DNA of 58,474 nt from Bigelowiella natans CCMP2755. Its lineage: Eukaryota > Protista > Cercozoa. Location: positions 1-58,474 of the forward strand of contig ADNK01000269.1 of assembly GCA_000320545.1 (NCBI GenBank), given 5' to 3'. The position numbers and the translations under genes were made by a program. How positions within the stretch are numbered: position 1 is the first letter of the stretch; every line of letters begins with the position of its first letter. Of this stretch, positions 566-40,571 are shown piece by piece. Under the pieces are notes generated by a model, which saw only the letters and a program-made list of their open reading frames with translations, did no database searches and was not told where the DNA came from.

Positions 566-890
566 TGTTGCGCGTAAGGTGTTCACAGGCCGAGGCGCTA
601 CGTGCACAAGTAGGCAGGGGGGGGGAAGGCACGTTTGCTTCCTTTTGAAGAGTTATGTTCATTTTTATTAAAGATTATATTTTTATTAAATCGTGCACTG
701 CGTAATCATTCGCGAAGCTTTCGCGAATGCCGCCGCACGTGGGGCAGCACACTTCCGGTGTGCTGCCATGAGTCCCGCCGGAACCCACGTGCCTATACTG
801 TATTAATATCTACGTTATCTATATTCTATATCCGCGACAACCCCTTTGTTGTCGCACGTGACTTGTGCTCGCGTAGTAGTACGCACTACA
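566..890 (-). repeat. 3' LTR of copy 1
   Basis: Direct repeat of 5955-6286. Termini are TGTAG...CAACA on the minus strand, preceded by the PPT. Confidence 0.95.
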
Positions 891-898
891 CCTCCCCC
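891..898 (-). other. polypurine tract of copy 1
   Basis: GGGGGAGG abuts the TG of the 3' LTR on the minus strand, with a further (GGAA)n purine run just upstream. Confidence 0.8.
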
Positions 899-941
899 AA
901 GTCACGTTGCTCCTTCCTTCCTTCCTTATTCCCTTAGACCT

Positions 942-3900
942 TTATCGCTTTCGGAACTTCACCAACCACCAGGTAATAGATTCCTCTCTAACCTTATCTC
1001 CTTTGTCGCTTACCCAGAACTCACCTTCGTCCTTAGGTTCGTGTCCATACCAGCCCTCTGCATCAAGGTCCCCCAGGACCTTATACCAGTGCTCAAAGGG
1101 TAAGTCGGGAACAGCTAGGTAGAGTAGCTGATATTTTCCGTCCTTTATTTTCATAGCTACCCTCTCCATATTTCGTAATCCAGGGTAGCCTAGATAGACA
1201 ATCTTCATGCGCCAATCGTCGTTCACCCTGACCTTATTGTTTCCATATTCCACATCGAACTTAGGTCGGGGTCCTAAACAAGGCATGGCTCGCTCCCACA
1301 CAGTAGGGTTTACTTTAACATCCTCTAGGAGCTTCTCACCGATATCATAATTCTTTAGGTGACTGATGTGGCGCAAGGTGACCCTGTTCCCATCATAGAT
1401 GTAGTACTGCTTCCTCCCCTTCCTCTCGGTAACCTTTGCAACGCCACCCCAGAAGGGGTCTTGTTTATTTCTCGATCTCAGATTTACCTTGGCCCTAACA
1501 TACTGTCCTTCCTTTAGAACTCGGCCATCGTACGGGACCTTCTCGTCTTCGCTCTCGGTATCGTCGTCGTTGTCGTCGCCTTCTTCCCTCTCCTTATCCT
1601 TGATACCTCCCCCAGACGTGAAGGTGTCGTTTACTAACCCTTGTATCTTGTCTGGTGTGGTGCTATTTATCCTGCTTAGGTTGGCCAAGGTGCGGTGGAG
1701 TCGCTCTACCTTGGAGTTGGACTGGGCATAGTATACAGGTGAGGCATCAATATTAGGGTGTGGTAGCTGTAGAAGAGAGGTCTCATTATCCACATGTAAT
1801 TTCTTTGGTATCTTGTTTATGCTAACTTCATCAGGGATAGCCTGGAGCTCAGACTCCCAGGTACGGTAGCAGTTAGTAAGCCTCTGCTTATATAAGCCTT
1901 TGTTCTTCTTAGCAACGTTGACCTTGATAATCTTTTTAACCCAGCACTTTCCAGTGGCCACATCAACGAAGGTAAGGTAGTGATAGCCATCGTACTTATA
2001 AACATCAATTTGCACGATATCTAAGAAGTTCCTTGCTTTGATTTTCTTAGATGCACGGCTCTTGCTGGACTCCTTGGTGGCGACACCTGCCGCTTCAAGC
2101 TGGAGCACCTGCAGCCACGCAGGTATGTCCTTATCTCTTTTAGCTTGTAGGGCCAGTAGTAATGGTAGAGTAGAGCAGTGATATGGTTTTCTCCTACGTG
2201 TGCAGGTCCATGGGCGGTAAAGAGAAGGGCTCCCCTGGTCCGCCGTGGCACGTAGGTACGCCTAACATTATTAGTGTATACATATATCCTATCACTAAGT
2301 ACCTCATGCTTGTGTTTGTATTTATCCAGGTGTTCTTGAAGGTGCTGGAGCTCCTCTGGCTCAGGCAGGAAGTCGCCGTCCTCGAAGGTAATCGCGTTAA
2401 CCATAGGGGTGACCTGGGTAGGGACTTTCTTTTCGAACAGCCTGCTGAAATAGTCAGCAAGCTGCTTGTCTCCTGGTGCGTAGACCACTGTCCTCTTGTC
2501 CCTAAACTCTTCCGTGTCCGCCCTCATAGCTGCATACTCATCGTTAGGCGCTTCGAGCTTGCGGTCGATGCCTAGGAGGGGCTTGTGGTCAGTCATTAAG
2601 GTGAAGCTGGGCACCGACAGCAGGTAGTATCTTAGTTTCCTCTGCGCCTCAGTCATGGCTTTATACTCTCCTTTTGTAGGGCTGTATTTGGCCTCAGCTG
2701 CTGTACAGGCCCTGCCCCACACCCGTATGATCTGCTGGTCTTGGGTAAGTACAGCAGCCATACCTAGCTTAGACCAGTCTGTCCATAGGGTAGCTGGTCT
2801 AGTAGTGTCTAGCTTAGCATTCAATAGGGTGTTGCTGCATAACTTTATTAGGTTATCGAAGTGGGCATCAAGGCCAGCCTTGGCCCACACCTTAGCGAAG
2901 CTGAGGCCTACAGAGTTCTCCTTCCGGTAAGCAGTAGTAAAAGCAGCTGCAGTCCTAGCGTAGGTAGGGGAGAACCTACGTAGTATCCAAGCTGCAGTCT
3001 GCAAGAATGACTTTAACTCCTTTGCATTCTTAGGTTTAGGGGCTTGCTGTAGTGCTGCTACTTTCTCGGGGTTTGGGGTGATGCGGCCTTGCTCCAGGTA
3101 ATATCCACACCACTTGATTCTTGTAGCTAGGAATGTACACTTCTGCAGTCTAATGGTAAAACCGAAGTGTGCAAACCTAATAAATATATTTTCCAGGAGG
3201 AAGATCTGAGCGACGACTGTGTTGGTACATATTATGTCATCATCCACATACACAAACACAAACACCCACAACACAGACGCCATCCCATCATGTGTGTATG
3301 CCCTGTAGTTCTGACTACTGAACGCATCCCCTGATGTGCTTAGGCCGTAAGGGAATACGACGAAGTGCCACTTCCTGTGCCTGCTGGAGAACGCGGTAAT
3401 GGGGCGGGAGGTTTTGTGGATGGGTGTCTGCATGTGTGATTCATTTTTATCTAGGGAAGAGTAGTATTTGTATCCTATGACGTGTTCAATGACGTCATCT
3501 ATCCTTGGTGTAGGTGTCTGGATCCTCTTTATTACTCGGTTGTGGCGGATGAAGTTGTGCGCCAGGCGGAAGAAAGGGTAAGTAGGTTTCTTAGCTAGCA
3601 CATGTCTCACGTTCCATGGTGAGTTGCTTGGCTCCATCTTCCCTTCCTTTGCCCATTCATTGATCTGCCACTCTATCTTTTCCCAGTCCGCTTCCGGTCG
3701 CCTATGTTCTGGGTCATTGATGATGCACTCTTCGTATCCCTCCTTTAGCTCGATCTTTACTGGGGTAAGTTTGCTGGAGGGCTTCGTCGTCGGCTTGGTA
3801 ATGTCAGAGTACTTCTCGTTTAATATTTTATTAATGTACTTTTTGCCTTTGTCGATATCCCAATCATCAGCTGGGGGGGTCTTGTCCAGTAGCTCCGTTA

Positions 3901-5915
3901 TCTGTCGGATGGTCTTGCCGGGGTTCTTCTTCCGTAGCTCGGTAGGTGTAGGTAGCTTGTTGTCCGCTAGGTCCATAAACTCTAACGCATTAACGCTTGA
4001 CTCAGAGGTCCACTCGTCAAGCCGTATCATGTTCTGGCTGATGGTCCTGCCTGACTTCTTTGGTAACTTAGCATAGTATATCTTGTGATTGTAGAATGAT
4101 ATGATCCCCCCTAATTTTTCTAGGGCATCCTGTCCGAGGAGTAGTTCCATGGATAAAGTCATGGCTACTCGGGTCTTGATTTGGGTCTCCGCGTCGCTGC
4201 CAGGTATCTGTAGCTTTAGCATTAGCTCACCGACGGTCTTCATAGAAGAGCTTCCGTCTGCTTGAGCATATTTACGTTCTTTCTTAGTCACTTGATCCAA
4301 TAGTCCTAACCTTCTTACTGTGCTTAGGCTTATGAAGGACTTCGGCATGCTGCCACTATCCCAAAGGGCAGGTAGTTTCTTGTAGTCTCCGTAGCTGTCT
4401 TTAACTTTAACCTTGGTCATAGCAACTTTGATAGTCCTGTTAGCGTCTTCGTCATTAATGTTGCATACTCCTAAGTTCTTTATGTCGTCTAGGGTCATGG
4501 GCTTGTCTTGGTCCTGCGTTGCTGGTACTGCTGTCTTCGTCGGCGCCTGCTTAAGGTGATCTAATATTCCGTTTATCTGCTGCTGTATAGCATTGATACT
4601 GTTCTGCTTCTTGTTCTTATATTTATTGTTCTTCCCGTTGTTGCTGCCTTGCCATTTGCTGTTGTTATATCCTTGTCCTCTGCCTTTCTTTCTCTTTAAC
4701 TTCTCGTAGTGTTCGTTGAGCTGCCTGATCGTCATCCTGGGTCGTCCTTCTTTCCTGTCTCTGCAGTCTTTAGCGGTGTGTTTCCCTTTACGTGAGCAGT
4801 ATCCGCAACGTCGGTTACCTTCCCTGTCCTTGTACCAGTCTCGCTGCGGCTTAATAGCGTTAATGTTTCCTATGCCAGGTACCTTAGGGCTGGTAAACTT
4901 GCGGTCCTGCTCCTGCTCGCGTAGGGATATAGCCCGCACTGCTGCCTCCATCGTGGTGTAGCCTTTCTCCGTAACGTAAGTGGATTCCTTTATCTTTAAC
5001 TTGAACTCTTCAAACCTTGCCTGATCATCACCTGTGTTGTAATTAAAATCATGTAGTTCGTCGATCATATCCTGGAAGCGCGTGGCAAAGTCTCTAACAG
5101 GTTCTCTCTCATGCTGCATCATTGCTCTGTATTTTCTAATAGCCTGGGGTAGGGAGTTAGCATCCTGTTCATTTACTAAAAGCCTTCATTATCGCCTCAA
5201 CGTCTCGTAGCCCACTAACTGTAGTGTGTATTTTCTCCAGCTGCCTGATCCGGGTCCTGCCTGTCTCGTAAAGGTCCATGGCTTGCTTTATTATAGCTAG
5301 CCATTTGAGCTTGTCGTTTTCGGTGGGGTTAGGGGTAAAGTCGCAGAGTATACTCCTAGCGTTCTTCCACCACCTCCTTGCCTCACCTCTTTTCCCGTTG
5401 TATTTCGTTGTCATAACCGGTGCTGTTTTAACAGACATGAACTGGGTGTTCCGCTGTACCGGCTGCTGCTGCTTGACGGTGCTCTGGGTCGTCCCCCGCG
5501 AGGCGCCCAGACCCCCGTCGTTCCTAAACAAAGCTGCCCACTCTGGAGGTAAGTCTGCTTCGTAATCCATGATGTCCTGCATGATAGCTGCCCAAACATC
5601 ATGTGTCTGATACTTGTATTCTATCGATACTTTCAGTTTGGCGTAGTTGCTCGCCCTGGGTCGCAAGGCTCGTAATGCCATTACGACCTTCTTGCTTTCG
5701 GCGGCCACGTCCTCGTCGTCCGCCTCGTAGAAGTTCTCCAGTGCCTCTGCTGCTGCATCTGCTTTCTTAATCCCGGGTGCTGGTCCCGGCGGTGCCTGTG
5801 GAGGTGTTCCTCCTCCTTCCTTAGCGTCCGTATCGCCCTTCCTTTCCTGTTTCTGCTCGTGCCCTTGCACGGCCTGCGAGCCAAAGTCCTGCTGTTCTTC
5901 TAGCTGCTGTAACAT
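942..5915 (-). pseudogene. gag-pol polyprotein of copy 1, broken by two single-base indels
   Basis: ORFs 5169-5915, 2021-5122 and 942-2108 together reproduce the 1657-aa ORF of copy 2. Relative to copy 2 there is a +1 base near 5177 and a -1 base near 2094 (either could be a sequencing error). Confidence 0.85.
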
Positions 5916-5931
5916 TGTTAGTCAAATCGTT

Positions 5932-5949
5932 TCCCGTGTGTGGAAGCCA
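5932..5949 (-). other. primer binding site of copy 1
   Basis: TGGCTTCCACACACGGGA lies 5 nt inside the 5' LTR and is complementary to a tRNA 3' end (...GGAAG-CCA). Confidence 0.7.
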
Positions 5950-5954
5950 AAGGT

Positions 5955-6286
5955 TGTTGCGCGCAAGGTGTTCACAGGCCGAGGCGCTACGTGCACAAGT
6001 AGGCAGGGGGGGGGGAAGGCACGTTTGCTTCCTTTTGAAGAGTTATGTTCATTTTTTTTTTTTTTAAAGATCATATTTTTATCAAATCGTGCACTGCGTA
6101 ATCATTCGCGAAGCTTTCGCGAATGCCGCCGCACGTGGGGCAGCACACTTCCGGTGTGCTGCCATGAGTCCCGCCGGAACCCACGTGCCTATACTGTATT
6201 AATATCTACGTTATCTGTATTCTATATCCGCGACAACCCCTTTGTTGTCGCACGTGACTTGTGCTCGCGTAGTAGTACGCGCTACA
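5955..6286 (-). repeat. 5' LTR of copy 1
   Basis: Repeat of 566-890 with about 5 substitutions and an expanded poly-T run. Confidence 0.95.
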
Positions 6287-6575
6287 GGCACGAATGCAAG
6301 CGCGGGGATGGACTTGTAGTTTTTGTGCGATGCAATGTGACGCAATCTAGCGATGCACGTTCGTTAGCATGACACGTAAACCATTATGTGTGTAAAAACA
6401 GACCAAAGTATGTACTACACGCGCATTACATAGCAAGTATTGCCGTATGCATGTGTTTCCGACTATGTACAAAATACAAAATGCAACGCCTCAGACGGCA
6501 CACAGCGAGCTTCCCTTTATAGCTCCCTAGCTCACACAACGAAAGGGAATATATTCACCCTGTTCAATGTAATCC

Positions 6576-7121
6576 TCATCTCGACATTTTGATGTCTGGT
6601 TGCTTTGGCGGGGGGCCCTTTTGTTCCATCTGCTGCCGTTGTTGAGGTGGATAAGGAGGTGGTGGCCCCCCCCTTCCCCTTCCCATGTATGGGGGAGGCG
6701 CCATTGGCATCATAGGAGGAGGCATAAATGGCCCTCTTGGAGGCATAAACGGGGGTCTCATGAAAGGGGGAGGCATACGAGGAACTCCCGGAAGGCCCAT
6801 AGGAGGAGCCATGGAAGGAGCGCCAGTCGATGACGTCAAGAATTCGGAATAGTCTTGAATGTTGAGAAAGATACATAGTTAGAACGTGCATGGGCGAATG
6901 AACAACATTCGAATTTATCATTGTTGAAAGATGTGAATAAAATTTTTAACTTTTGAAGGAAATGATTCTCAGCAGTCAAAATAAAATTCTCGATTTTCTA
7001 GGTCATGCTTACATTGGCGAACATTCTCCTGGTGCCTTCTTCCATGCATATGCTGTTTTCGGCCCGCTTGAGAATCATGCGTTAGGTAGATGTCACAGTA
7101 ATCGCAATAGAATCGTCCCAT
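6576..7121 (-). CDS. SNRPC: U1 small nuclear ribonucleoprotein C (2 exons: 7121-7013, 6853-6576)
   Basis: Spliced translation [41 protein letters not shown] matches the U1-C matrin-type zinc finger and is followed by a Pro/Met/Gly-rich tail. The GT-AG intron keeps frame. Confidence 0.93.
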
Positions 7122-8066
7122 TTTTTAATGTGCCTGAGATGCGAAGCCTTCTGCGAGCTTTGTATCAGCAATGAAAGAATTCAGCTTTAGTTTCCAAATA
7201 GCTATTAAGGATTTAATCGTTATAAGGTATATGCGACATCGAATACATGTAATTTATTGTTAAAAGTAAGGACATTTCGGAACAGTATGGGTAATACTTA
7301 GGCATGCCGAGGAAGATTTATCACGTCCTAGATTTAATCACGGCAGTCGTAAATTAGTCCCGGTATTATAATTATTGTTATTACCCATGCAGTTCTGAAA
7401 ACTGGAATTCGAAAGAATGTATTGAAACTAAGAATCTCCAAACTCGCTGTTATCCATTCCTTTTAGAAGAGAGAAGGTACGTAGACTACGACTAGATCTA
7501 TTCGTTCTGATTTTGTTCTTCCAAAAAATGAACCTTCCCTTTCTTTCAGACGTTTCTGGGTTTCCCACGAAGTTTTTCGATGTTTTTCTCTTCGGTGCTA
7601 GAAAAAAATTGATAATTTTACTTAATTTTGTGAAATCGGGCTGGAAAGCGAAGGAATAATAGGCTATGATTTTATTTATTCGGTAAAAAATGTCAGACTT
7701 TCAACAGACACAAGAACAAGCCACTGTGTTGATCGAAATCTGACCTCAAACTCCCTGCGTTTATACGACAAAAAATGGACATATCGTGAAATTATTGAAA
7801 AGAACATAGTCCATTCCTTCGCAACACACTATCGGATTCTCCATTTTTAAGATAGATATTGTTCCAAAAACAAACAGATAATTGAAAAATGGGATACAAA
7901 AAGGCTATTGTTGCATTCATTTTATAATTTTATCTCATTTTCCCCCACATTTTGGCTGTGCTGTCAATAAGAATAAATCCGAAACAGGGTATCGTGGGAA
8001 CGGATTACTTTTTAACCGATTGCAATCGCACTGCAGTTGGTATTTTGTCCCCCCCCCCCCTCACCT

Positions 8067-9307
8067 ATGAAACGTAATCTGCATCATCATCGTTTATCGT
8101 ATGGTGATGATGACAAAGAGAACTCGTTAGCTGCGGGGAACAAGAAGGTGGTTTTCACTCGCAAAAAATCAAAAATCCCACAAAGTAGTCCTCCGCCATT
8201 GGAGGATCCAGATCTTGCTTCAAAGTTTGAATGCCCAATCTGCCTACATTGCTACGACCACGTAATTTACGTATGTTCCAATGGACATTCGGTGTGCAAA
8301 ACATGCTATGAGAAGATTGAGCCGAAAAGGTGCCCGTCATGCCGAGTTCCTCTCACCGGAGCAAGGAACCAAGCTCTCGAGGCAGTAGCCAGTCACACAA
8401 TTCTCCCATGCCGTCATAAGGAATACGGATGCGACTTTAAGGTAGAATTTTAGTTACCCATTCGTCTCAGATGAAAGTGATGTATTGGTCTTTGAAGGGC
8501 AGAGGCCTTGCGCGGGCTAATCATAGGAATAGCTGCGTTTTTCGGCCGATAAGATGTCTCTTCCACAGGTATTCTATAATTACGGCAAAGCGATCCCATT
8601 TTTACTCTGAGAAATTTTTCATACAGATGCTATCCACAGTGTAAATGGCACGGTCCTCCGAGTGCTCTCCTAAAACATCTAAATACCCATTGCATGGTGC
8701 GGAAGATCAAACAGGTACGGAAAACAAGCTGATCTAATACTTTCTACTCCATGGCTCAAGTAGATATTTTTGTCCAAAGGATCAGCCATGTGATGTTTAC
8801 TGGAGCTACGAGACAAAGGAAAGATGTTGGCAGCGGGGCAAGGATGCAACCTTTTTTTCCCATGATTACAATCGATTTTACTACATGAGCATCAGTAGAC
8901 GGGGGGAACACTATCATCTGGCTTCGGTATGGCTTCCTACCACAGTAAAGGCCGCGGAGTCGCCAACCCTACAAATGGAAGTCAGTATCCCTCTCGAGGA
9001 TGACGAGTTTGTCACTTACACTCTGAAACCTCCTCGACTGGATCCGAGCTTGATGATGGATGGTAATGTGAAGCGGCTCATCGACCAGGGGAAAAGTTTC
9101 ATCATTCCCATCAAAAAGTGGAGGTACCCGCATCCCATTTTCTCTGAAGCATGGCTGCTATATCTCGACTATGGATAATGTGTGATGTATGTGACTTTCC
9201 ACCCTCACAAAATCTTGACTGATTGACTCATGTGCAGGAGTCAATGGATAGAAGACCGTAATAAGTACTACTTCAAAATATCCGCCCGATGGAAGCAATG
9301 TTCATGA
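8067..9307 (+). CDS. SINA/SIAH-like RING E3 ubiquitin ligase (multi-exon)
   Basis: FECPICLHCYDHVIYVCSNGHSVCKTC...CPSCR...RNQALEAVA...LPCRHKEYGC is a SINA-type RING plus zinc finger. Further GT-AG exons run to a TGA at 9305-9307. Confidence 0.8.
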
Positions 9308-9540
9308 TAAAGCTAAAAACCTCACTTTAGAAAGGGGAAAATAAGTATAACCTTCCTAGCAACCATTTATACTGCTTAGTTTTAAGTGAATCTTCAGGAT
9401 TAAAATTGAAGCAGCTCGAGTTGTCTGTAGAACGCGAATGAGCCTGAGGTTTAGGTACCCAAGGCCAAACCCGCTAGTTTTACATTGATTACTAAGTTTA
9501 ACATCCTTTATTTCACTTTTCATCGTGGAAATAACGATGG

Positions 9541-10500
9541 GTGGTGATGTACATCTAGAACTTCACAATGTGCGTTCATTTAGACATTAACACGAACGTG
9601 CAGATGCTCAATCTACATTGAGGCCAGACGCAGTTCTGTAGAGACTGTGTCGAAGCGATTGATCTACACGCATAGCCTAGGTGCACAAGCAACACACAAA
9701 AATACCATTATGAGAGGCAGTACCATCGTTCACATGCGATCCAGACAGAGCCCATTGAGATTGCTACACATGCGACGATGTATAGAGCATGTGTGTTCGC
9801 ACCGCACTAGCGCAGCATGAATAGACAAGCTTAAGTCTAGCTAGAAGTAGCAGTTGGCTTCGTCAATTGCAGCATCACTAGCTAGATCACACGAGCATCC
9901 CTAGATCCGGGCTCGCACGACAGCCCACGCCTCACTCAATAATGCGCTAGTATACTAGATCGAATGATCCGCGTGCGAGTGGATCATTGCGATTATAAGC
10001 TAGCGATAGGTGAGCGCGAGCAGCATGCAGGTGCATGATCGATATATAGAATGCATGCGCAAGCTAGATCTATAGAGATCTAGAAATATCCACGGTATAC
10101 ATGCTAGCACATCTAGATATCTACTAGCTACTACTAGATATATCTAGATATGTGTCATTGACAAAATTTGTTGATATTGATGCAGTTTCGCCCGCGGCTC
10201 ATGATCAATAAGCGCGCGCATTTCTAGATGTTTCTGTGTTTTCTGGTCAGTTTTAGTTTCTTTGCAAGCTAGCAAGCGCATGCGCGTGCGACATGGTAGC
10301 TAGCTAGCTATATATTAGCTCTCTAGCTCTAGAGCTAGTATGTGCGCATGTGCCATGTGCATGGTATCGATGTAGTCATGATATTCAGCTTGAACTCATT
10401 TGTGAATTCCCAACGCAGGCTCGTAACATGCTAGCATGCTAGCATGGCTAGATGGCGTAGCATGCAAACATCGTCTAGCACATATAGAACTAGAGAAGAC
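9541..10500. other. CTAG-rich, purine/pyrimidine-alternating convergent intergenic spacer
   Basis: About 30 CTAG in 960 bp by manual count (about 4 expected), with many CATG/TGCA/GCGC. Lies between the 3' ends of two genes. Confidence 0.8.
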
Positions 10501-10505
10501 TTTCA

Positions 10506-11813: not shown

Positions 11814-12000
11814 AAGGAGCGTTTCTCTTCGGTACGCCCTCTTCTCTCTCTTCCCCTCTCTTCTATTTTCGTACCTCACCCAACTTGTATCTCTCTGATC
11901 AATCTGCAACTGCTGAGATCTGGGGGTGAACGAATGCAGAGATCATGCGACATACAGAAAATGCAGTCGGAAGACGTAAATTGCATGGGAATTACTACAT

Positions 12001-13260
12001 TTTGCTAGAACGACTTCACTCGTCTCACAAAAATGCTTCGCGTCGTCGCCACATTGCTGCTTGTTGTCAGTCACACTGCTCCAAGCTAGTGTCCCATCAT
12101 CCCAATCCTGCTGGTCTTCACCAGTCAGTCCTCACCATGGCTAGTTCGAGGCACTGCGTTTCGTGCATTGTGAGTGTTTTGCCACACTTGCTTTGGGAAC
12201 GTTGTTTTTCATCGTTGTCTTGTTTGCCTCGTCTGCTTTGGGTGCCACGTCTTTGAATCGAAACAAAACGAAAACGAAATGCATTTTGGAGAAGTGCGAG
12301 AGCAACTTGTGAAACACAACTGCAACCCCATCAAAGTTGAAAAGAGAAGGAAATGCCTTCTGGCCTTCGTGCAAAGAGAAGAGTTGGTGGTTGCTGCTTT
12401 TTGCAACGACCTGCGCACCCATCCTGCGCCCTGCGCACACGCAGCGCAACACGCAGGGAACGTGAAAACTCAGTCGTTGTTGACCAAGCTAGCAAGGGGG
12501 ACTGAAGCGGACTCTTGGTGCTTGGATTGCTGGAAGTGTTCGAGAGGGCTGTGGCCGAAGAAAAAGGGGCGATCGACGAGAGGAACAGTGGGAGTGCGGT
12601 TCGATCAACGATGGAAACGAATGGGCAATGCATGCCGAATGCGCGTGATGCAAACAACCACCCGTTCTAGCGTTAGAAGACGGCAGCCAATCATGCAAGT
12701 CGCACAATGGTCTGATGGTACACATAGGTATAGTGTTGCTGTCACCGACTGCACTAGCTAGCTAGACCACTCGAGCGATTCATCTAGTCATCATGTACAT
12801 GAAGTGACGCGAAGTGTCGCATGTCTAGATGTGCTATGTCGGCACGCGTGCACACTGTGAATCAATGAGCCGCGCGTCCTGGCACGCGCATTGCCAGAAT
12901 GATGTGCGAATGATGCGTGCAATGATGCTTGCTAGCTTGGCGTGTCGCTTGCTCTCGATGGCGATCCATGCGCAAGCAGGCGCTTGCGCCTGCCACGATG
13001 CTTTTCTTCGCTGCATGGCCTGTTGGTCACGTGCGTGTGGTGCGATGGTCGTGCATGTATGGGCATGCAGGCTAGCAGGTGCACACACACACGATTGTTG
13101 CACACAGTTTTCATGCGTTGCGATCGATGCATGTCATAATGTATGGCATAGCTGCTAGCATGAATGACATTGCAGTGCACAATGCCAGCTAGAATGCATT
13201 GCCTCTTTTCATGTGCTGCACGTGCACACATATGACCATCATGCTTGGACAATTGTGATG
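12001..13260. other. TpA-depleted block containing a decayed dispersed repeat
   Basis: 12001-12670 has only 5 TA, all in CTAG. 12125-12220 is homologous to 34711-34820. Confidence 0.85.
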
Positions 13261-13444
13261 AGTCCACAGTACTGAAAAGCGTAAAAAGTACTGCGTTGTG
13301 TGCAGCACTACTGTGGATTAGGTTCAAAGAAGAAAGGTATCATGCAGTATCCCACCCACGAGGCAACTCAGAAATCATTGGTGTGAATCATGGTGTCATT
13401 TGATGAAGACTTTGACACGATAATTTGCAGAGAAATTCCACGCT

Positions 13445-16845: not shown

Positions 16846-17038
16846 TAATGCGTCTGGTTGATAATCTTAGATCACTGTATTCGTGGCTTTATGAACTAAA
16901 CTAGCACAAATGACCATACATGTCCAAAGTAGAATGTGTAAGACTCGGATGCTTTGTCATTCTTCACTTTCTAAGCTCTCCGCTTGTTTAAAGCCTGGCT
17001 AGCATCGCACATGATCGTTCAAATTAGGAAGAACATTT

Positions 17039-26455: not shown

Positions 26456-26543
26456 TTCCTTATGTCGTGAGCAACGCCGTCAAAGCCTCATTGTCAATGT
26501 TCCAGCTCGTTGCCTCATATTTGAATGGTCAGAAGGCTACAAC

Positions 26544-27409: not shown

Positions 27410-27461
<52 letters not shown>

Positions 27462-28285: not shown

Positions 28286-28933
28286 AACAAAAAAAGCAAC
28301 ATGGTTATTCCAAGTGTCTGATCGTTTTTAGCTCAATCATAGTTATTCACCACTAAGGTGTCAATCATCACTGCTTTAGGTTGCACTTGAACCAAATCAG
28401 AACTACACATGTACATACCTATGTGTGTAGGGATACACTGTGACACTGTGACTTTAGTCAGAGATGTGTGCATGAAAAAGACTCAATCTTGTGCCACGCT
28501 AGCACGTGCGTCGGCGATGCTGCTTTGCGAAACCGACCGATCTGCGTTTCTGCAGTCAGTCATGCATTAAGAATCGTGGTGTACTAGTGTAGCATGTAAC
28601 TTCAAATTCGTCATCATTACTTCGTCATGCGTGCATGTGCTATAGTGTGCATGGTGCAGCCTAGTGCATGCACCTAGAGTTTGCACGTGTGCATCACAGT
28701 ATGCGTGATGTGTAGTAATGATAAAATTATTATAAGACCGCTAATGGCAGTGTTGCATGATGTGTGGCATGTACTAGTGTAAACATGCCCGTCGCAAAGC
28801 GATACTGTCGTATGTTCTGCTACTGTATCATTGTTGTTACGTTCATGCAAGCGCAGATGCCACTCCGCGCCTTCACGTGAGGTCCAAGCCTGCTAGCCTG
28901 CTATCGCTCAGCATGTAACAATACAGGAAATAT

Positions 28934-28977
<44 letters not shown>

Positions 28978-29298
28978 TTTATGCCAGATTGCACTAGGTG
29001 TTACATTTAGCTTTGCCTTGTTATTAAGTCACATCACATGATTAGACATTCATGATCTAAGACGACAAATTGTTTCCAAACACAGGCAGGCATCCTTTTC
29101 TATGACTAACCCTTCTAATACTTCTTTAACCATCATTTTGCATTTCTTTTTCGACGAACTATTTACACTATTCTCCCTGGTGAAGTTTCTGGATGGCTTC
29201 ATCTTGACTATTGAGACTTGTCTCACACCTTTTATCTTGCCCATATTTTGACTGCACTCTGCATTTATCTATCCCATTGTGCAGTAGTTGCCAGATCA

Positions 29299-31029: not shown

Positions 31030-31860
31030 GGTATTGCTGTCTTCGATGGAGACTGAGAAAAATTGTATCAGTTTTAGCTTTAGTTTATTCGGATTCACTT
31101 TCGCTCGAGAAGGGGAGGGAAGAAGAGAGAGGGAGAGGGGGAAGAGGGGAAACACAGATGCGTGCGTGCGCACGCACGCACGCACGCACGCACGCACACA
31201 CACAGGACCTGTGGATATTCGAAGTCTGGGTGGTGGACGGAAGTTAGGTGTGAGGAGTACCGGAAGTTATCAAAAATGTAGGTCGATGAAGCCAAAAAGA
31301 GTGAAGTCCTTCTTCTTTTCAGCTGAATCCCTCTGCTCCTGCAACAAATCGGTAATGACTCCTTCTCTTCGGAAGGGAAAGACCCCCATATGCAAGTGTT
31401 GTGGGTGTTTTTTAAGTCAGAACCCGAGATATCTCGCTAGAATCTCGAGCACAAACGAACTCCTTTCTCTCCCTGCGGCATGAACCAAATTGACAAAAAG
31501 GAGGAATTGCAAGAGATAAGCCACGCTGTGCTCCGAACCACAACGGCTGAACATCTCAGATCGGTAAAGCGCAAGCATGAGAAACTGTTTCATGGGTAAA
31601 ACGCCGTATAATTTTTGAACTACGGCATCATCTTCCCGTGTCGGCATGGAAAAATAAATCTGTTTCATCCGAACAGAACACTTGGCTCTTTGGGAAAATG
31701 AGGGGTACCAAGAGAAATCAGCACATCTACGTCAAAAAACTTGCCGATGAGAAAAAATCCAGCACAATTCACAGCTGCAACAAGGAGATTCATCGCAAAT
31801 TCATCGCAAAAACTGGCAACTTGTCATCTCAACGCGCAGAGCGGAGAAGTCACCGGTACC

Positions 31861-33184
31861 CCTTCTCGTTGCACCAGGCAGTGTGATCGTGGCTTCTCCT
31901 AGAAACGAAATCAGCTTTTGTCACTTCCTTCTTTCTTCTCGTTTTTGAGTTTGGTTCGCCTGTTGCACTCGGTGCGCGTGTGTTCTGCTTCACATTGCCC
32001 GTCTGTTTGAGCGCGCCCAACTTGTCAGCAGTGACCTTGTTGGAGTGTCACACGAACACGAACTTTGCTAGTTTGGACCTTGAGAGTGCTCTTGTCCTCC
32101 GATCCTTTTTCTTTTCCTTGCTTGCACTCGTTTGTCCCTGATGCTTCACTCACGAAACGTTCCAGCGTTTTGCCGTTGCCACTTTTTGAACCGCTCTGGC
32201 ACTCGGAGTCGTGCAACGTGACCACTTCACCTTTTCACTCGTCCAGTCGTTACTTGCTCGTTCGTTGGGAATCAGCTGTGGACCACATCAGCTTGAGGTG
32301 TGTCCAGCTTGTCCTCTTGTCAACAGCACCGCCAGCAGCCAGTGTGCGCAAGACACTGTCACTGTTGGAACGTCGAGCTGGTCACGAGTTGACCAACCAG
32401 TCAATCACTCGTTCCTTCACGTTCGCAATTGGACGTTTGTTGCGTTTGTTCGTTCTGAGCACGTGCCTGCTCCGTCGGTCAGTTTTTGTTTGAGGTGCGC
32501 TGGTGCATCCATCAGCCCGCTCCAGCATTGCTGTTGGCTTGCTAGCTTGGTTCCGAGTTGCATGAATGACACGCCAGCACGCCTCTTGTTGAAACGTTGA
32601 AGTGAGCACGACTTGAGTGAATGAATTGTGAATGGCAAGTGATCAATTGTGTGAGTTCTGTCGGTGGATCCTTGCATGGAGTGTGAAGTTGAACTCAACT
32701 TCCTGTTGTGACTCTGACCATCCAATTTTCAGCACGGCATTGCACGAGGCGCATGCCAGCACTGGAGCATGCCAGCATGGCGCGCGTCTCAAGTGACGTG
32801 ACAAGCGAGTGGAACAACCAAACACATCCAGACGCGTGCCAGCGTGTTGAACAAAGCCATGGCGCGCGAGTTGCAATTTCTGGACTGGTGGACCAAGCCA
32901 GAACAGGAGTGCGTGCGTGCATGCAACTCACAATGCCTGCATATCTTGCCATGGGACATGGGACACGCTGCGATTCACGATGATCGATCGGGCTGTACGT
33001 GCTAGCGTGTGCAACGTGCATCACAATGCGTTTTTGGGTTGAGCAGGTGTGTCGGTGCATTCGGATTGTCCTGGCGGTGTCATGCACACACATGCATGCA
33101 CGCACGATGCATCTGGCTAGTGTTGGGCACACATGCATGCACGGCACACAATGAACTCACGCACACACGCGCGCATGTCTAGAC
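31861..33184. other. TpA-depleted block
   Basis: 9 TA in about 1320 bp by manual count, 6 of them in CTAG. Confidence 0.88.
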
Positions 33185-33299
33185 TTGATGAGGACACTTG
33201 ATGAGGACACCAAAGCAATGAAACAGCTGCTCGAAGGAAATGGTGATTAACAAATTACTTCGTCTCAAGACCAAACGGAATGAGAGCTTCTTGCGCAGG

Positions 33300-34855
33300 A
33301 AGTCCTAAACTTGTTCCCTGAATCAACGAGGCACATCACATCTCTCTAGCAAGATTTCTGTGCATGAATTGTGGTCGGCCTCACCCTCACGTTATGATTG
33401 AGGATTCATGCAAATATGGCTTTTGTTCGTTACGATATTGCGCAATGCTCTCTTGACTACCTGCATTTCAGCCGCCGATTCCAAAACAGATAACAGTTTC
33501 TGTGAAAAGTCACGAAGCAAGAAGTTACTAACATGTGTGCAGACAACCAGCTAACTGGCTGAGCCACTACCTTGGCAGGTTTTTGAGCTTGAACAAGTGG
33601 GCTTAAGACTATGGAACGGACGTCCCACTCTTCGACTATGAGCATTGCAACGGGTTCCTATTCAGCAGCACAGACTTAAATTTTATACTGAGTGGTCACA
33701 CAGGGAATAGTTTTCACCGTAGGATTGTCGTCTGCCAACAACATGAGTAGCTTTTCAGATTCTGAACCGTCTACAAACGACAACAGGATTGATGTTGGGA
33801 AAACATTGGCTGAAGTGAAATTAAATACTTTCGACTGATTTCTTAAATGCCTGCAGTAGTTGCCTTTCTTTTGTTCTGCCTGTGGCTAGAAGATAGTGGA
33901 GTCAGACACATGTGCTTGACATGCGCGTACTGCTGGGCGTGACTGTTAAAGAAAATCCATACCAAAGTCCTCGTCCATGACAACTTCCAAATACCAATTT
34001 GCAAGAGTCTAGTGGATACAATAATTGGTTTAATAAACATAAACCCAGGATGAAAGGGCTTTTAGTTTACCTGCACAGTCTCCCTTTTAATGGCATCGTC
34101 CTCAACTGAAACTGTTTGAAGACTGAACCCGTCAAACTTAGCTTTATCGATGTGCGAGGAAATGCCCGCCCGGAGAACAGGTCCACACAATATGTGACGG
34201 TTCTTTGAAATTGAATTAAATTAATCGCACATCGAACCGACAGTTTGGATTGATTAGCATCCAACCTTTAGGGTGTGCTGGGAAATAAAGTTGTGGAATC
34301 GAGGAGAGGCGCTAGCACGTTCCATGACTGTCAAAATTACAACATCACCTATAAATCCTTCTACGCATAGTTCAATCACAATTTTCCCGGAATTTCAAAA
34401 GCATTCTTGCCTGGCATCTGGGTTTTGGGAACACGCACAGCCACTGCCAAGAAATCTGACATGCAGGTAGTCAACACAAATGCCACAGTTCCAACCAACA
34501 GGGCCAGAAACAACGTCCACCTTACAGAGTTAGAGTTGTACTACATGTGAGCATTACCCAAGGCATTGCATTTGATCTGAAATCACTACCGTTTGTTGTT
34601 GATGGGGATCATGACTCGATCTACGTCGGTCGGTTCGGCTGTCCGTTCTGTTCCGAAGCCCTGGAGATTCTCCCGAGTTTGGTCGACTTTTTGTGGATTG
34701 TTGACCCTGACCAAAGCCCTCACTGAAGCCAATTGACTGAAGCCAGTTCGAGGCACTGCGTTTCGCACACTGCAAGTGTCTTGCAACACTTTGGAAATGT
34801 AGTTCATCATCATTGTTCATTGACCCTGATTTTCGTGACACACGATCCTTTCAAC
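33300..34855 (-). pseudogene. possible decayed multi-exon gene interrupted by retrotransposon copy 2
   Basis: Minus-strand splice-donor-like sites (CAG/GTAAA near 34070, CAG/GTAGT near 33460) and broken frames. The end nearest the LTR is homologous to 12125-12220. Confidence 0.3.
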
Positions 34856-35181
34856 TGTAGCGCGTACCACTACGCGGGCACAAGTCACGTGCGACAACAA
34901 AGGGGTTGTCGCGGATATAGAATATAGATAACGTAGATATTAATACAGCATAGGCACGTGGGTTCCGGCGGGACTCATGGCAGCACACCGGAAGTGTGCT
35001 GCCCCACGTGCGGCGGCATTCGCGAAAGCTTCGCGAATGATTACGCAGTGCACGATTTAATAAAAATATAATCTTTAATAAAAATAAACACAACTCTTCA
35101 AAAGGAAGCAAACGTGCCTTTCCCCCCCCCTGCCTACTTGTGCACGTAGCGCCTCGGCCTGTGAACACCTTACGCGCAACA
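34856..35181 (+). repeat. 5' LTR of copy 2
   Basis: TGTAGCGCGTA...TACGCGCAACA (10/11 terminal inverted repeat). Contains hairpins and AATAAA. Confidence 0.97.
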
Positions 35182-35186
35182 ACCTT

Positions 35187-35204
35187 TGGCTTCCACACAC
35201 GGGA
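35187..35204 (+). other. primer binding site of copy 2
   Basis: TGGCTTCCACACACGGGA follows a 5-nt spacer and is complementary to a tRNA ending ...TGTGGAA-G-CCA. Confidence 0.7.
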
Positions 35205-35220
35205 AACGATTTGACTAACA

Positions 35221-38200
35221 ATGTCACAGCAGCTAGAAGAACAGCAGGACTTTGGCTCGCAGGCCGTGCAAGGGCACGAGCAGAAACAGGAAAGGAAGGG
35301 CGATACGGACGCTAAGGAAGGAGGAGGAACACCTCCACAGGCACCGCCGGGACCAGCACCCGGGATTAAGAAAGCAGATGCAGCAGCAGAGGCACTGGAG
35401 AACTTCTACGAGGCGGACGACGAGGACGTGGCCGCCGAAAGCAAGAAGGTCGTAATGGCATTACGAGCCTTGCGACCCAGGGCGAGCAACTACGCCAAAC
35501 TGAAAGTATCGATAGAATACAAGTATCAGACACATGATGTTTGGGCAGCTATCATGCAGGACATCATGGATTACGAAGCAGACTTACCTCCAGAGTGGGC
35601 AGCTTTGTTTAGGAACGACGGGGGTCTGGGCGCCTCGCGGGGGACGACCCAGAGCACCGTCAAGCAGCAGCAGCCGGTACAGCGGAACACCCAGTTCATG
35701 TCTGTTAAAACAGCACCGGTTATGATAACGAAATACAACGGGAAAAGAGGTGAGGCAAGGAGGTGGTGGAAGAACGCTAGGAGTATACTCTGCGACTTTA
35801 CCCCTAACCCCACCGAAAACGACAAGCTCAAATGGCTAGCTATAATAAAGCAAGCCATGGACCTTTACGAGACAGGCAGGACCCGGATCAGGCAGCTAGA
35901 GAAAATACACACTACAGTTAGTGGGCTACGAGACGTTGAGGCGATAATGAAGGCTTTTGTAAATGAACAGGATGCTAACTCCCTACCCCAGGCTATTAGA
36001 AAATACAGAGCAATGATGCAGCATGAGAGAGAACCTGTTAGAGACTTTGCCACGCGCTTCCAGGATATGATCGACGAACTACATGATTTTAATTACAACA
36101 CAGGTGATGATCAGGCAAGGTTTGAAGAGTTCAAGTTAAAGATAAAGGAATCCACTTACGTTACGGAGAAAGGCTACACCACGATGGAGGCAGCAGTGCA
36201 GGCTATATCCCTACGCGAGCAGGAGCAGGACCGCAAGTTTACCAGCCCTAAGGTACCTGGCATAGGAAACATTAACGCTATTAAGCCGCAGCGAGACTGG
36301 TACAAGGACAGGGAAGGTAACCGACGTTGCGGATACTGCTCACGTAAAGGGAAACACACCGCTAAAGACTGCAGAGACAGGAAAGAAGGACGACCCAGGA
36401 TGACGATCAGGCAGCTCAACGAACACTACGAGAAGTTAAAGAGAAAGAAAGGCAGAGGACAAGGATATAACAACAGCAAATGGCAAGGCAGCAACAACGG
36501 GAAGAACAATAAATATAAGAACAAAAAGCAGAACAGTATCAATGCTATACAGCAGCAGATAAACGGAATATTAGATCACCTTAAGCAGGCGCCGACGAAG
36601 ACAGCAGTACCAGCAACGCAGGACCAAGACAAGCCCATGACCCTAGACGACATAAAGAACTTAGGAGTATGCAACATTAATGACGAAGACGCTAACAGGA
36701 CTATCAAAGTTGCTATGACCAAGGTTAAAGTTAAAGACAGCTACGGAGACTACAAGAAACTACCTGCCCTTTGGGATAGTGGCAGCATGCCGAAGTCCTT
36801 CATAAGCCTAAGCACAGTAAGAAGGTTAGGACTATTGGATCAAGTGACTAAGAAAGAACGTAAATATGCTCAAGCAGACGGAAGCTCTTCCATGAAGACC
36901 GTCGGTGAGCTAATGCTAAAGCTACAGATACCTGGCAGCGACGCGGAGACCCAAATCAAGACCCGAGTAGCCATGACTTTATCCATGGAACTACTCCTCG
37001 GACAGGATGCCCTAGAAAAATTAGGGGGGATCATATCATTCTACAATCACAAGATATACTTTGCTAAGTTGCCAAAGAAGTCAGGCAGGACCATCAGCCA
37101 GAACATGATACGGCTTGACGAGTGGACCTCTGAGTCAAGCGTTAATGCGTTAGAGTTTATGGACCTAGCGGACAACAAGCTACCTACACCTACCGAGCTA
37201 CGGAAGAAGAACCCCGGCAAGACCATCCGACAGATAACGGAGCTACTGGACAAGACCCCCCCAGCTGATGATTGGGATATCGACAAAGGCAAAAAGTACA
37301 TTAATAAAATATTAAACGAGAAGTACTCTGACATCACCAAGCCGACGACGAAGCCCTCCAGCAAGCTTACCCCAGTAAAGATCGAGCTAAAGAAGGGATA
37401 CGAAGAGTGCATCATCAATGACCCAGAACATAGGCGACCGGAAGCGGACTGGGAAAAGATAGAGTGGCAGATCAATGAATGGGCAAAGGAAGGGAAGATA
37501 GAGCCAAGCAACTCACCATGGAACGTGAGACATGTGCTAGCTAAGAAACCTACTTACCCTTTCTTCCGCCTGGCGCACAACTTCATCCGCCACAACCGAG
37601 TAATAAAGAGGATCCAGACACCTACACCAAGGATAGATGACGTTATTGAACACGTCATAGGATACAAATACTACTCTTCCCTAGATAAAAATGAATCATA
37701 CATGCAGACACCCATCCACAAAACCTCCCGCCCCATTACCGCGTTCTCCAGCAGGCACAGGAAGTGGCACTTCGTCGTATTCCCTTACGGCCTAAGCATA
37801 TCAGGGGATGCGTTCAGTAGTCAGAACTACAGGGCATACACACATGATGGGATGGCGTCTGTGTTGTGGGTGTTTGTGTTTGTGTATGTGGATGATGACA
37901 TAATATGTACCAACACAGTCGTCGCTCAGATCTTCCTCCTGGAAAATATATTTATTAGGTTTGCACACTTCGGTTTTACTATTAGACTGCAGAAGTGTAC
38001 ATTCCTAGCTACAAGAATCAAGTGGTGTGGATATTACCTGGAGCAAGGCCGCATCACCCCAAACCCCGAGAAAGTAGCAGCACTACAGCAAGCCCCTAAA
38101 CCTAAGAATGCAAAGGAGTTAAAGTCATTCTTGCAGACTGCAGCTTGGATACTACGTAGGTTCTCCCCTACCTACGCTAGGACTGCAGCTGCTTTTACTA

Positions 38201-40194
38201 CTGCTTACCGGAAGGAGAACTCTGTAGGCCTCAGCTTCGCTAAGGTGTGGGCCAAGGCTGGCCTTGATGCCCACTTCGATAACCTAATAAAGTTATGCAG
38301 CAACACCCTATTGAATGCTAAGCTAGACACTACTAGACCAGCTACCCTATGGACAGACTGGTCTAAGCTAGGTATGGCTGCTGTACTTACCCAAGACCAG
38401 CAGATCATACGGGTGTGGGGCAGGGCCTGCACAGCAGCTGAGGCCAAGTACAGCCCTACAAAAGGAGAGTATAAAGCCATGACTGAGGCGCAGAGGAAAC
38501 TAAGATACTACCTGCTGTCGGTGCCCAGCTTCACCTTAATGACTGACCACAAGCCCCTCCTAGGCATCGACCGCAAGCTCGAAGCGCCTAACGATGAGTA
38601 TGCAGCTATGAGGGCGGACACGGAAGAGTTTAGGGACAAGAGGACAGTGGTCTACGCACCAGGAGACAAGCAGCTTGCTGACTATTTCAGCAGGCTGTTC
38701 GAAAAGAAAGTCCCTACCCAGGTCACCCCTATGGTTAACGCGATTACCTTCGAGGACGGCGACTTCCTGCCTGAGCCAGAGGAGCTCCAGCACCTTCAAG
38801 AACACCTGGATAAATACAAACACAAGCATGAGGTACTTAGTGATAGGATATATGTATACACTAATAATGTTAGGCGTACCTACGTGCCACGGCGGACCAG
38901 GGGAGCCCTTCTCTTTACCGCCCATGGACCTGCACACGTAGGAGAAAACCATATCACTGCTCTACTCTACCATTACTACTGGCCCTACAAGCTAAAAGAG
39001 ATAAGGACATACCTGCGTGGCTGCAGGTGCTCCAGCTTGAAGGCGGCAGGCGTCGCCACCAAGGAGTCCAGCAAGAGCCGTGCATCTAAGAAAATCAAAG
39101 CAAGGAACTTCTTAGATATCGTGCAAATTGATGTTTATAAGTACGATGGCTATCACTACCTTACCTTCGTTGATGTGGCCACTGGAAAGTGCTGGGTTAA
39201 AAAGATTATCAAGGTCAACGTTGCTAAGAAGAACAAAGGCTTATATAAGCAGAGGCTTACTAACTGCTACCGTACCTGGGAGTCTGAGCTCCAGGCTATC
39301 CCTGATGAAGTTAGCATAAACAAGATACCAAAGAAGTTACATGTGGATAATGAGACCTCTCTTCTACAGCTACCACACCCTAATATTGATGCCTCACCTG
39401 TATACTATGCCCAGTCCAACTCCAAGGTAGAGCGACTCCACCGCACCTTGGCCAACCTAAGCAGGATAAATAGCACCACACCAGACAAGATACAAGGGTT
39501 AGTAAACGACACCTTCACGTCTGGGGGAGGTATCAAGGATAAGGAGAGGGAAGAAGGCGACGACAACGACGACGATACCGAGAGCGAAGACGAGAAGGTC
39601 CCGTACGATGGCCGAGTTCTAAAGGAAGGACAGTATGTTAGGGCCAAGGTAAATCTGAGATCGAGAAATAAACAAGACCCCTTCTGGGGTGGCGTTGCAA
39701 AGGTTACCGAGAGGAAGGGGAGGAAGCAGTACTACATCTATGATGGGAACAGGGTCACCTTGCGCCACATCAGTCACCTAAAGAATTATGATATCGGTGA
39801 GAAGCTCCTAGAGGATGTTAAAGTAAACCCTACTGTGTGGGAGCGAGCAATGCCTTGTTTAGGACCCCGACCTAAGTTCGATGTGGAATATGGAAACAAT
39901 AAGGTCAGGGTGAACGACGATTGGCGCATGAAGATTGTCTATCTAGGCTACCCTGGATTACGAAATATGGAGAGGGTAGCTATGAAAATAAAGGACGGAA
40001 AATATCAGCTACTCTACCTAGCTGTTCCCGACTTACCCTTTGAGCACTGGTATAAGGTCCTGGGGGACCTTGATGCAGAGGGCTGGTATGGACACGAACC
40101 TAAGGACGAAGGTGAGTTCTGGGTAAGCGACAAAGGAGATAAGGTTAGAGAGGAATCTATTACCTGGTGGTTGGTGAAGTTCCGAAAGCGATGA
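35221..40194 (+). CDS. gag-pol polyprotein: Gag with zinc knuckle, aspartic protease, reverse transcriptase, RNase H, integrase, C-terminal Dam-like domain
   Basis: Knuckle CGYCSRKGKHTAKDC; protease ALWDSGS; RT LDKNESYMQ, FPYGL, YVDD; RNase H WTDWS, GEYKA, TDHKPL, ADYFSR; integrase H-H-CxC, QID..VD..DNE..VER, then a GPY/F-like segment. Confidence 0.97.
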   Translation: MSQQLEEQQDFGSQAVQGHEQKQERKGDTDAKEGGGTPPQAPPGPAPGIKKADAAAEALENFYEADDEDVAAESKKVVMALRALRPRASNYAKLKVSIEYKYQTHDVWAAIMQDIMDYEADLPPEWAALFRNDGGLGASRGTTQSTVKQQQPVQRNTQFMSVKTAPVMITKYNGKRGEARRWWKNARSILCDFTPNPTENDKLKWLAIIKQAMDLYETGRTRIRQLEKIHTTVSGLRDVEAIMKAFVNEQDANSLPQAIRKYRAMMQHEREPVRDFATRFQDMIDELHDFNYNTGDDQARFEEFKLKIKESTYVTEKGYTTMEAAVQAISLREQEQDRKFTSPKVPGIGNINAIKPQRDWYKDREGNRRCGYCSRKGKHTAKDCRDRKEGRPRMTIRQLNEHYEKLKRKKGRGQGYNNSKWQGSNNGKNNKYKNKKQNSINAIQQQINGILDHLKQAPTKTAVPATQDQDKPMTLDDIKNLGVCNINDEDANRTIKVAMTKVKVKDSYGDYKKLPALWDSGSMPKSFISLSTVRRLGLLDQVTKKERKYAQADGSSSMKTVGELMLKLQIPGSDAETQIKTRVAMTLSMELLLGQDALEKLGGIISFYNHKIYFAKLPKKSGRTISQNMIRLDEWTSESSVNALEFMDLADNKLPTPTELRKKNPGKTIRQITELLDKTPPADDWDIDKGKKYINKILNEKYSDITKPTTKPSSKLTPVKIELKKGYEECIINDPEHRRPEADWEKIEWQINEWAKEGKIEPSNSPWNVRHVLAKKPTYPFFRLAHNFIRHNRVIKRIQTPTPRIDDVIEHVIGYKYYSSLDKNESYMQTPIHKTSRPITAFSSRHRKWHFVVFPYGLSISGDAFSSQNYRAYTHDGMASVLWVFVFVYVDDDIICTNTVVAQIFLLENIFIRFAHFGFTIRLQKCTFLATRIKWCGYYLEQGRITPNPEKVAALQQAPKPKNAKELKSFLQTAAWILRRFSPTYARTAAAFTTAYRKENSVGLSFAKVWAKAGLDAHFDNLIKLCSNTLLNAKLDTTRPATLWTDWSKLGMAAVLTQDQQIIRVWGRACTAAEAKYSPTKGEYKAMTEAQRKLRYYLLSVPSFTLMTDHKPLLGIDRKLEAPNDEYAAMRADTEEFRDKRTVVYAPGDKQLADYFSRLFEKKVPTQVTPMVNAITFEDGDFLPEPEELQHLQEHLDKYKHKHEVLSDRIYVYTNNVRRTYVPRRTRGALLFTAHGPAHVGENHITALLYHYYWPYKLKEIRTYLRGCRCSSLKAAGVATKESSKSRASKKIKARNFLDIVQIDVYKYDGYHYLTFVDVATGKCWVKKIIKVNVAKKNKGLYKQRLTNCYRTWESELQAIPDEVSINKIPKKLHVDNETSLLQLPHPNIDASPVYYAQSNSKVERLHRTLANLSRINSTTPDKIQGLVNDTFTSGGGIKDKEREEGDDNDDDTESEDEKVPYDGRVLKEGQYVRAKVNLRSRNKQDPFWGGVAKVTERKGRKQYYIYDGNRVTLRHISHLKNYDIGEKLLEDVKVNPTVWERAMPCLGPRPKFDVEYGNNKVRVNDDWRMKIVYLGYPGLRNMERVAMKIKDGKYQLLYLAVPDLPFEHWYKVLGDLDAEGWYGHEPKDEGEFWVSDKGDKVREESITWWLVKFRKR

Positions 40195-40237
40195 AGGTCT
40201 AAGGGAATAAGGAAGGAAGGAAGGAGCAACGTGACTT

Positions 40238-40245
40238 GGGGGAGG
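40238..40245 (+). other. polypurine tract of copy 2
   Basis: GGGGGAGG lies immediately before the 3' LTR, with a purine-rich run at 40201-40226 upstream. Confidence 0.8.
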
Positions 40246-40571
40246 TGTAGCGCGTACCACTACGCGGGCACAAGTCACGTGCGACAACAAAGGGGTTGTC
40301 GCGGATATAGAATATAGATAACGTAGATATTAATACAGCATAGGCACGTGGGTTCCGGCGGGACTCATGGCAGCACACCGGAAGTGTGCTGCCCCACGTG
40401 CGGCGGCATTCGCGAAAGCTTCGCGAATGATTACGCAGTGCACGATTTAATAAAAATATAATCTTTAATAAAAATAAACACAACTCTTCAAAAGGAAGCA
40501 AACGTGCCTTTCCCCCCCCCTGCCTACTTGTGCACGTAGCGCCTCGGCCTGTGAACACCTTACGCGCAACA
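40246..40571 (+). repeat. 3' LTR of copy 2
   Basis: Apparently identical to 34856-35181. Confidence 0.97.

Follow-up and report, generated by a model that had tools for sequence, protein, structure and literature searches.

The question raised by this 58,474-nt stretch of Bigelowiella natans CCMP2755 DNA (the window) is whether two young retrotransposon copies record a process that removes the dinucleotide TA (TpA). One long terminal repeat (LTR) retrotransposon occurs twice in the window, as oppositely oriented copies with 99.1% identity (BLAST and MAFFT): copy 1 (566-6286, minus strand) and copy 2 (34856-40571, plus strand). The 5' half of copy 1 is very probably an early footprint of the TpA to TpG/CpA hypermutation of DNA that operates in B. 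natans, because all eight private changes are A:T to G:C transitions at TpA, fall on both strands, cluster in 2.9 kb, are mostly nonsynonymous inside the element, and lie in a dead copy. The process itself is real but has already been described (Mettrop et al. 2026, bioRxiv 10.64898/2026.01.13.699255). New here are polarised, early-stage hits in an LTR retrotransposon, a preference for W-T-A (W being A or T), a hot spot in an AT-rich LTR segment, hit lineages that still transpose, and identical repeats that are untouched.

The family has roughly 370-680 matches. Eleven intermediate copies (L027-L037) were compared with the pair, as were 18 more LTRs and a fragment of the family on contig C225; states were counted site by site, without a consensus. 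The genome searches scored the best 24-40 candidates, so that the copy sample is biased toward the closest relatives of the two queries, with diverged copies beyond reach. Copy 1 has eight private substitutions, and all eight are TA to CA/TG changes at sites where about 35 other copies (12 distinct copies and 23 identical to copy 2) have TA. The sites are window positions 6217, 6083, 5964, 5410, 3635, 3491, 3436 and 3336, which define a hit part at 3336..6217 on the minus strand. In copy-2 coordinates they are 34925, 35059 and 35172 (hit in the 5' LTR only), 35726, 37500, 37644, 37699 and 37799. Under a random-site model the chance that eight of eight fall in the TpA class is about 5e-9. The hits affect 8 of 190 TpA in the 5' 2.9 kb (about 4%) and none of the 207 in the 3' remainder of 2.8 kb (p = 0.005). 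On the coding strand, three are A>G and five are T>C. Four of the five internal hits are nonsynonymous (I169T, I760M, Y827H and I860T), and the internal private states occur in no other copy examined. Copy 1 is dead, with two private frameshifts (an extra A at window 5177 and a G missing between 2094 and 2095). Among all TA-class differences, these eight, confined to the 5' half of the copy, are the only demonstrable hits. No heavily mutated relatives of the family were found by self-BLAST of the window or by BLAST of 46 flanks against the element.

Direction had been read in the preliminary description partly by comparing the two LTRs of copy 1. Dating or polarising copy 1 in this way was rejected as unsound, as copy 1 has no target-site duplication (TGCC vs GCAA) and its LTRs are of two family haplotypes; a 4-bp duplication is present in 21 of the 23 other master copies, i.e. 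those identical to copy 2. The 3' LTR of copy 1 (325 nt, 566..890, minus strand) has the haplotype of L027/L028 except for one CpG to TpG change at window 885. Its 5' LTR (332 nt, 5955..6286, minus strand) has an unlike haplotype, and among other LTRs it is closest to the one at the 3' end of an unrelated insertion (contig C225). The flanks are also unlike: the unhit 3' end adjoins TA-erased DNA and the hit 5' end adjoins normal DNA (6 vs 30 TpA in 565 nt). Copy 1 is a composite of two elements, joined by recombination or in assembly, because the target-site duplication is absent, the LTRs are of two haplotypes and the flanks differ. LTRs of two haplotypes are also seen in another copy, L033 (G000:C2101:17466-23180), in which the 5' LTR is master-like at 34868/34877/34949 and the 3' LTR belongs to the other haplotype, so genomic copies seem often to exchange sequence.

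The direction TA to CA/TG is nevertheless supported, by the sister LTR on C225, the other copies and homology to Ty3. The 5' LTR of copy 1 and the C225 3' LTR share a six-A insertion and three other states. They differ at exactly three positions, which are the hit sites; C225 and every other copy have TA there, and copy 1 has CA/TG. Within the reverse transcriptase (RT), copy 1 carries Tyr TAC to His CAC at residue 827 and Ile ATA to Met ATG at residue 760, and the master states Tyr827 and Ile760 align with a conserved Tyr and Ile of Ty3 RT (PDB 4OL8). The two RT changes and the loss of TA, both claimed earlier, are thus borne out, the latter also by the eight private sites.

Direct comparison of copies 1 and 2 gives a broader set of differences. 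MAFFT alignment of the internal region yields 22 substitutions and 2 single-base indels; 13 of the 20 internal transitions are TA<->CA/TG, where 26.6% would be expected from site composition (p = 3.5e-4). This agrees with the count of about 22 and with all 13 positions listed in the preliminary description. This class also makes up 8 of the 11 substitutions in the 5' LTR, where the preliminary description gave about 8 of 10. Four LTR sites at which only the 5' LTR of copy 1 has CA/TG within the two-copy comparison are present as claimed (34925, 35059, 35070 and 35172 in copy-2 coordinates).

Differences that are common to further copies have another character. They form two haplotypes with a mosaic occurrence, and the four-gamete test fails (for example, 36891 vs 38430). 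Twelve of 16 lineage-level changes are synonymous, which differs from the four in five nonsynonymous changes among the private internal hits of copy 1 (Fisher p = 0.047). The TA<->CA/TG class supplies eight of the 15 internal transitions at lineage level (p = 0.025). Four differences between the two copies are AA<->AG; these are lineage-level and fall in synonymous Lys codons. The stop codon is TGA in the master and TAA in all nine other copies. The shared polymorphisms are differences between active, recombining lineages under selection, not post-insertion decay. Checking the family state at the differing sites, as had been suggested, therefore gives a divided answer: about 35 other copies have TA at the eight private sites, and lineage-level sites are mixed. 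Copy 2 has no private changes. It is identical over its full length to at least 23 further full-length copies on other contigs, and belongs to a very recent burst. The proposal of ongoing hypermutation across both copies thus holds for eight sites of copy 1, all in its 5' half; copy 2 shows none, and the rest are mostly synonymous lineage differences.

TpA to TpG/CpA hypermutation has been shown experimentally in integrated viral DNA of B. natans (Mettrop et al. 2026, bioRxiv 10.64898/2026.01.13.699255). Across 15 mutation-accumulation lines there were 302 nuclear mutations, of which 231 lay in two integrated regions, one from a giant virus and one from a virophage. Of these 231, 230 were A to G or T to C, at TpA according to the authors. 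Mutation there ran at about 1000 times the baseline rate, and the effect was seen only in some lines. The main target was a transcriptionally silent single-copy region, in which the change arose de novo and was heritable. Hypermutation was local, the rest of the genome being spared, including other foreign inserts, and the baseline outside the hypermutable regions was AT-biased. The authors propose deamination of DNA adenine by the ADAT2 homologue Bn78255, an ADAT2/ADAT3-type enzyme. They also report that TpA-poor coding sequences are enriched for reverse-transcriptase and DDE domains, from which they infer a long-term footprint with transposons as possible targets (bioRxiv 10.64898/2026.01.13.699255). 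The words 'retrotransposon', 'LTR', 'trinucleotide' and 'context' do not occur in the text of the preprint (bioRxiv 10.64898/2026.01.13.699255). Four T>C rows for scaffold 10 in its Table S2 have the context ATG (3) or ATT (1), although the text places all at TpA.

The suggestion of a mutator directed at TpA is therefore supported, in the sense of action on foreign or silent DNA, both by the eight private sites and by the mutation-accumulation experiment (bioRxiv 10.64898/2026.01.13.699255), and the statement that no such system was known in this lineage is superseded by the same work. The label 'inverse RIP' (RIP, repeat-induced point mutation) misleads as to the trigger. The preprint numbers give a rate, per TpA and generation, of 1.1e-5. 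At this pace copy 1 would need about 3900 generations to reach its load of 8 hits in 190 TpA, and 24 identical copies (8952 TpA) would stay clean for only about 30 generations. As there are no hits in the 24 identical copies, the burst copies would not be targeted at the preprint rate, unless the assembler homogenised them. We infer that the process is probably not repeat-induced, since at least 24 identical repeats are untouched.

The same signature recurs across the family. Among low-frequency events in all copies, 18 are TA to CA/TG and 2 are the reverse. Of the polarised A:T to G:C transitions, 18 of 21 are at TpA, against 27% expected (p = 4e-8); the three others are all in L034, at CA or TG sites. 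No polarised low-frequency event is AA to AG. On the coding strand, the 18 events divide into 11 A>G and 7 T>C. In L030, TA to TG/CA changes are found at 35068, 35070 and 35080 in both LTRs and at 37303 and 37461, and its private events are all A>G on the coding strand (5/5). L029 has one at 35043 in both LTRs, and L031/L032/L036 share one at 35061, in both LTRs where both are sequenced. Others are at 37279 in L033 and at 35077 and 35079 in L040. A variant in both LTRs of one element predates the insertion of that element, so hit elements went on transposing. L034 (G000:C3705:47767-52913) also lacks about 565 nt internally (element ~2881-3447) and has a tight cluster of three adjacent non-TpA changes at copy-2 coordinates 35197-35200. 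At L019 / L025 (G000:C1247:9409-9564), a full-length master copy is directly preceded by a 156-nt LTR fragment, making a partial tandem LTR.

Flanking bases and position in the element both appear to matter. In 16 of 18 events A or T stands at -2, before the T of TA (p = 9e-4), and only 2 of 18 have G after TA. In a hand count of Table S2 of the preprint (bioRxiv 10.64898/2026.01.13.699255), TAG makes up 3 of 91 A>G events. An AT-rich LTR segment at 35058..35080 on the plus strand (equivalent to 40448-40470) holds 7 events in 5 lineages, and all six of its TpA are hit in at least one lineage. In long copies, 5 of 16 events fall in this segment, which has 1.6% of the TpA (p = 4e-6), an excess that may owe something to relaxed selection on the LTRs of active lineages.

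Four blocks of the window have been almost cleared of TpA. One adjoins the 3' end of copy 1 (1..565) and retains 6 TpA, 5 in CTAG and 1 in GTAC. Another is the insertion site of copy 2 (40572..41400), with 6 TpA in 829 nt, 5 of them in CTAG and none in the first 565 nt. The other two blocks, at 12001-13260 and 31861-33184, are likewise TpA-depleted. The 47 TpA that survive in the four blocks include 30 CTAG and 4 GTAC; neither CTAC nor GTAG is present. S-TA-S (S being C or G) thus accounts for 34 of 47 survivors, versus 21% in the rest of the window. As the survivors are rich in CTAG and lack CTAC and GTAG, C before T on both strands protects best. Flanks of 1.5 kb were taken for the 23 master copies (L002-L024), and the nearest 500 nt are TpA-poor and CA/TG-rich, with a median observed/expected TpA of about 0.37 (table read by eye); the median in 1.5-kb tiles of the window is 0.74. 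This suggests that new insertions prefer regions which are already hypermutated. BLAST against the element rules out that the flanks are themselves old copies of this family.

A mechanism can be proposed on this basis. Adenine in duplex or transiently melted DNA would be deaminated to hypoxanthine and then read as G. The enzyme would prefer W-T-A and act poorly on C-T-A-G. Targeting would depend on the locus or chromatin state rather than on repetition, given that copy 2 and at least 23 identical sisters have no hits. Lightly hit elements could still transpose, as several lineages carry TA to TG/CA variants in both LTRs, and the mutator would then feed differences between active lineages. A fuller reading is offered only tentatively: that a mutator with a W-T-A preference works less readily when C precedes or G follows TA, and most often hits the AT-rich, promoter-like LTR segment, as it would if transiently melted DNA were required; that lightly hit elements keep transposing, so that defence would be a main source of substitutions between active lineages; and that the lineage which burst is one that has already lost exposed TpA at about nine sites. 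Profile searches of the genome for a deaminase found six loci of the CDA-fold family PF00383 and one of the A_deamin family PF02137, at C2414. PF14441 (OTT_1508-type deaminase) and PF12851 (TET/JBP) had no match in the genome, but the controls were equally without match.

The best of the alternatives, though an improbable one, is A-to-I editing of the genomic RNA of the retrotransposon, in which an ADAR- or ADAT-type enzyme would favour A after a 5' U. Changes would be fixed by reverse transcription and would precede integration. The one A_deamin-family locus would fit, as would the strand uniformity of the L030 events. TA to TG variants in both LTRs of single elements (L029, L030 and the L031 group), which predate the insertions, would be expected as well, but DNA hits in a parent copy which later transposed would account for them just as well. 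Editing of plus-strand RNA cannot yield T>C on the coding strand, which makes up 5 of 8 copy-1 hits and 7 of 18 overall. The preprint, moreover, finds the same heritable change in a transcriptionally silent single-copy region (bioRxiv 10.64898/2026.01.13.699255).

That the cause is not a targeted base modification but faulty copying of WA motifs by a polymerase-eta-like enzyme, or an overall T>C bias, is highly improbable. TA is a WA motif, and the four AA<->AG differences between the copies would suit such an enzyme; however, these are the lineage-level Lys codons already mentioned, AA to AG is absent from the polarised events, and the three A:T to G:C events outside TpA are confined to L034, at CA/TG sites. 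A general T>C bias is at odds with the AT-biased baseline outside the hypermutable regions (bioRxiv 10.64898/2026.01.13.699255). Equally hard to credit is an artefact from errors in sequencing or assembly, or a run of transitions that arose by chance. Copy 1 could be an assembly join of two copies, and its alleles come from the assembly only, but errors are not so specific to context as eight of eight in one dinucleotide, and the signature recurs in independent copies on other contigs. Least credible of all is the opposite polarity, i.e. RIP-like or 5-methylcytosine-type decay of CpA to TpA in which copy 1 is ancestral and the other copies derive from a mutated master: an unrooted tree does not polarise the five internal private sites taken alone, and lineage-level sites go both ways between haplotypes, but this reading is opposed by TA at all three sites in the C225 LTR despite its shared derived features, by the conserved Ty3 states at Tyr827 and Ile760, by four of five internal changes being nonsynonymous in a dead copy, and by the TA to CA/TG direction measured de novo in the species (bioRxiv 10.64898/2026.01.13.699255).

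Several points weigh against DNA hypermutation as the explanation, or limit what it covers. Eight internal TA<->CA/TG differences are lineage-level and could run in either direction, and one of them, 35898, looks like a reverse change by parsimony. The flanking-base rule comes from a small sample (18 events). The deaminase-fold set is ordinary-looking and does not single out the enzyme. That the 24 copies are perfectly identical is, like the alleles of copy 1, an assembly result, and an assembler can homogenise near-identical repeats and so mask private hits. As copy 1 is composite, its LTR pair gives no date for the hits, which may have come before or after integration.

The element itself is a Ty3/gypsy-type LTR retrotransposon. 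Its LTRs begin with TG and end with CA, and the 4-bp target-site duplication and the pol order also agree with Ty3/gypsy (Metaviridae). Copy 2 has a 5' LTR of 326 nt (34856..35181, plus strand) identical to its 3' LTR (40246..40571, plus strand), and is bounded by the target-site duplication CAAC at 34852..34855 and 40572-40575. Between the LTRs is an intact gag-pol open reading frame of 1657 aa (35221..40194, plus strand) with the Ty3/gypsy domain order: weak gag, aspartyl protease, RT, RNase H and integrase zinc finger (Pfam). The nearest relative of the RT is Ty3 RT (PDB 4OL8, E = 3e-20). The zinc finger (E = 5e-4) is the sole part of the integrase found by Pfam, which detected no catalytic core in the copy-2 polyprotein. 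Pfam also gave no methyltransferase or other credible family in the last 257 residues (window 39421-40191, plus strand), even at E <= 1. The corresponding gag-protease-RT-RNase H-integrase region of copy 1 is at 891..5954 on the minus strand, by alignment with copy 2. Unrelated to the retrotransposon are direct repeats at window 47716-49065 with a spacing of 804 nt, comprising two 300-nt copies which are 99% identical and a third partial copy.

The known process is a eukaryotic A:T to G:C mutator aimed at foreign DNA, and this locus extends its range from two viral inserts to an LTR retrotransposon. The early stage lets single events be read. Three testable constraints on the mechanism follow: repetition is not the trigger, flanking bases matter, and the AT-rich LTR segment is a hot spot. 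The results also suggest that the defence influences how surviving elements evolve.

Among known systems, RIP of filamentous fungi is similar in being a context-specific transition mutator which degrades mobile DNA and leaves its products enriched over the target dinucleotide. Fungal RIP, however, changes C to T at CpA, is triggered by duplication and hits all copies; here the direction is the opposite and identical repeats are untouched. Restriction by animal deaminases (APOBEC3 on minus-strand cDNA and ADAR hyperediting of double-stranded RNA) likewise produces clustered, context-specific transitions in retroelements, and a 5' T/U preference is common to the present hits and to ADAR and TadA/ADAT enzymes. 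Those enzymes act on replication intermediates or RNA and make strand-coherent changes, whereas both strands are hit in one copy here and the measured process acts on resident chromosomal DNA. The process described by Mettrop et al. is the closest: it is found in the same species, and the hits match it in type (A to G or T to C), in position at TpA, in affecting both strands, in being local and in being aimed at foreign DNA. It differs in its targets, which were one giant-virus and one virophage insert; the target here is a young LTR retrotransposon copy, in which polarity can be assigned site by site at an early stage.

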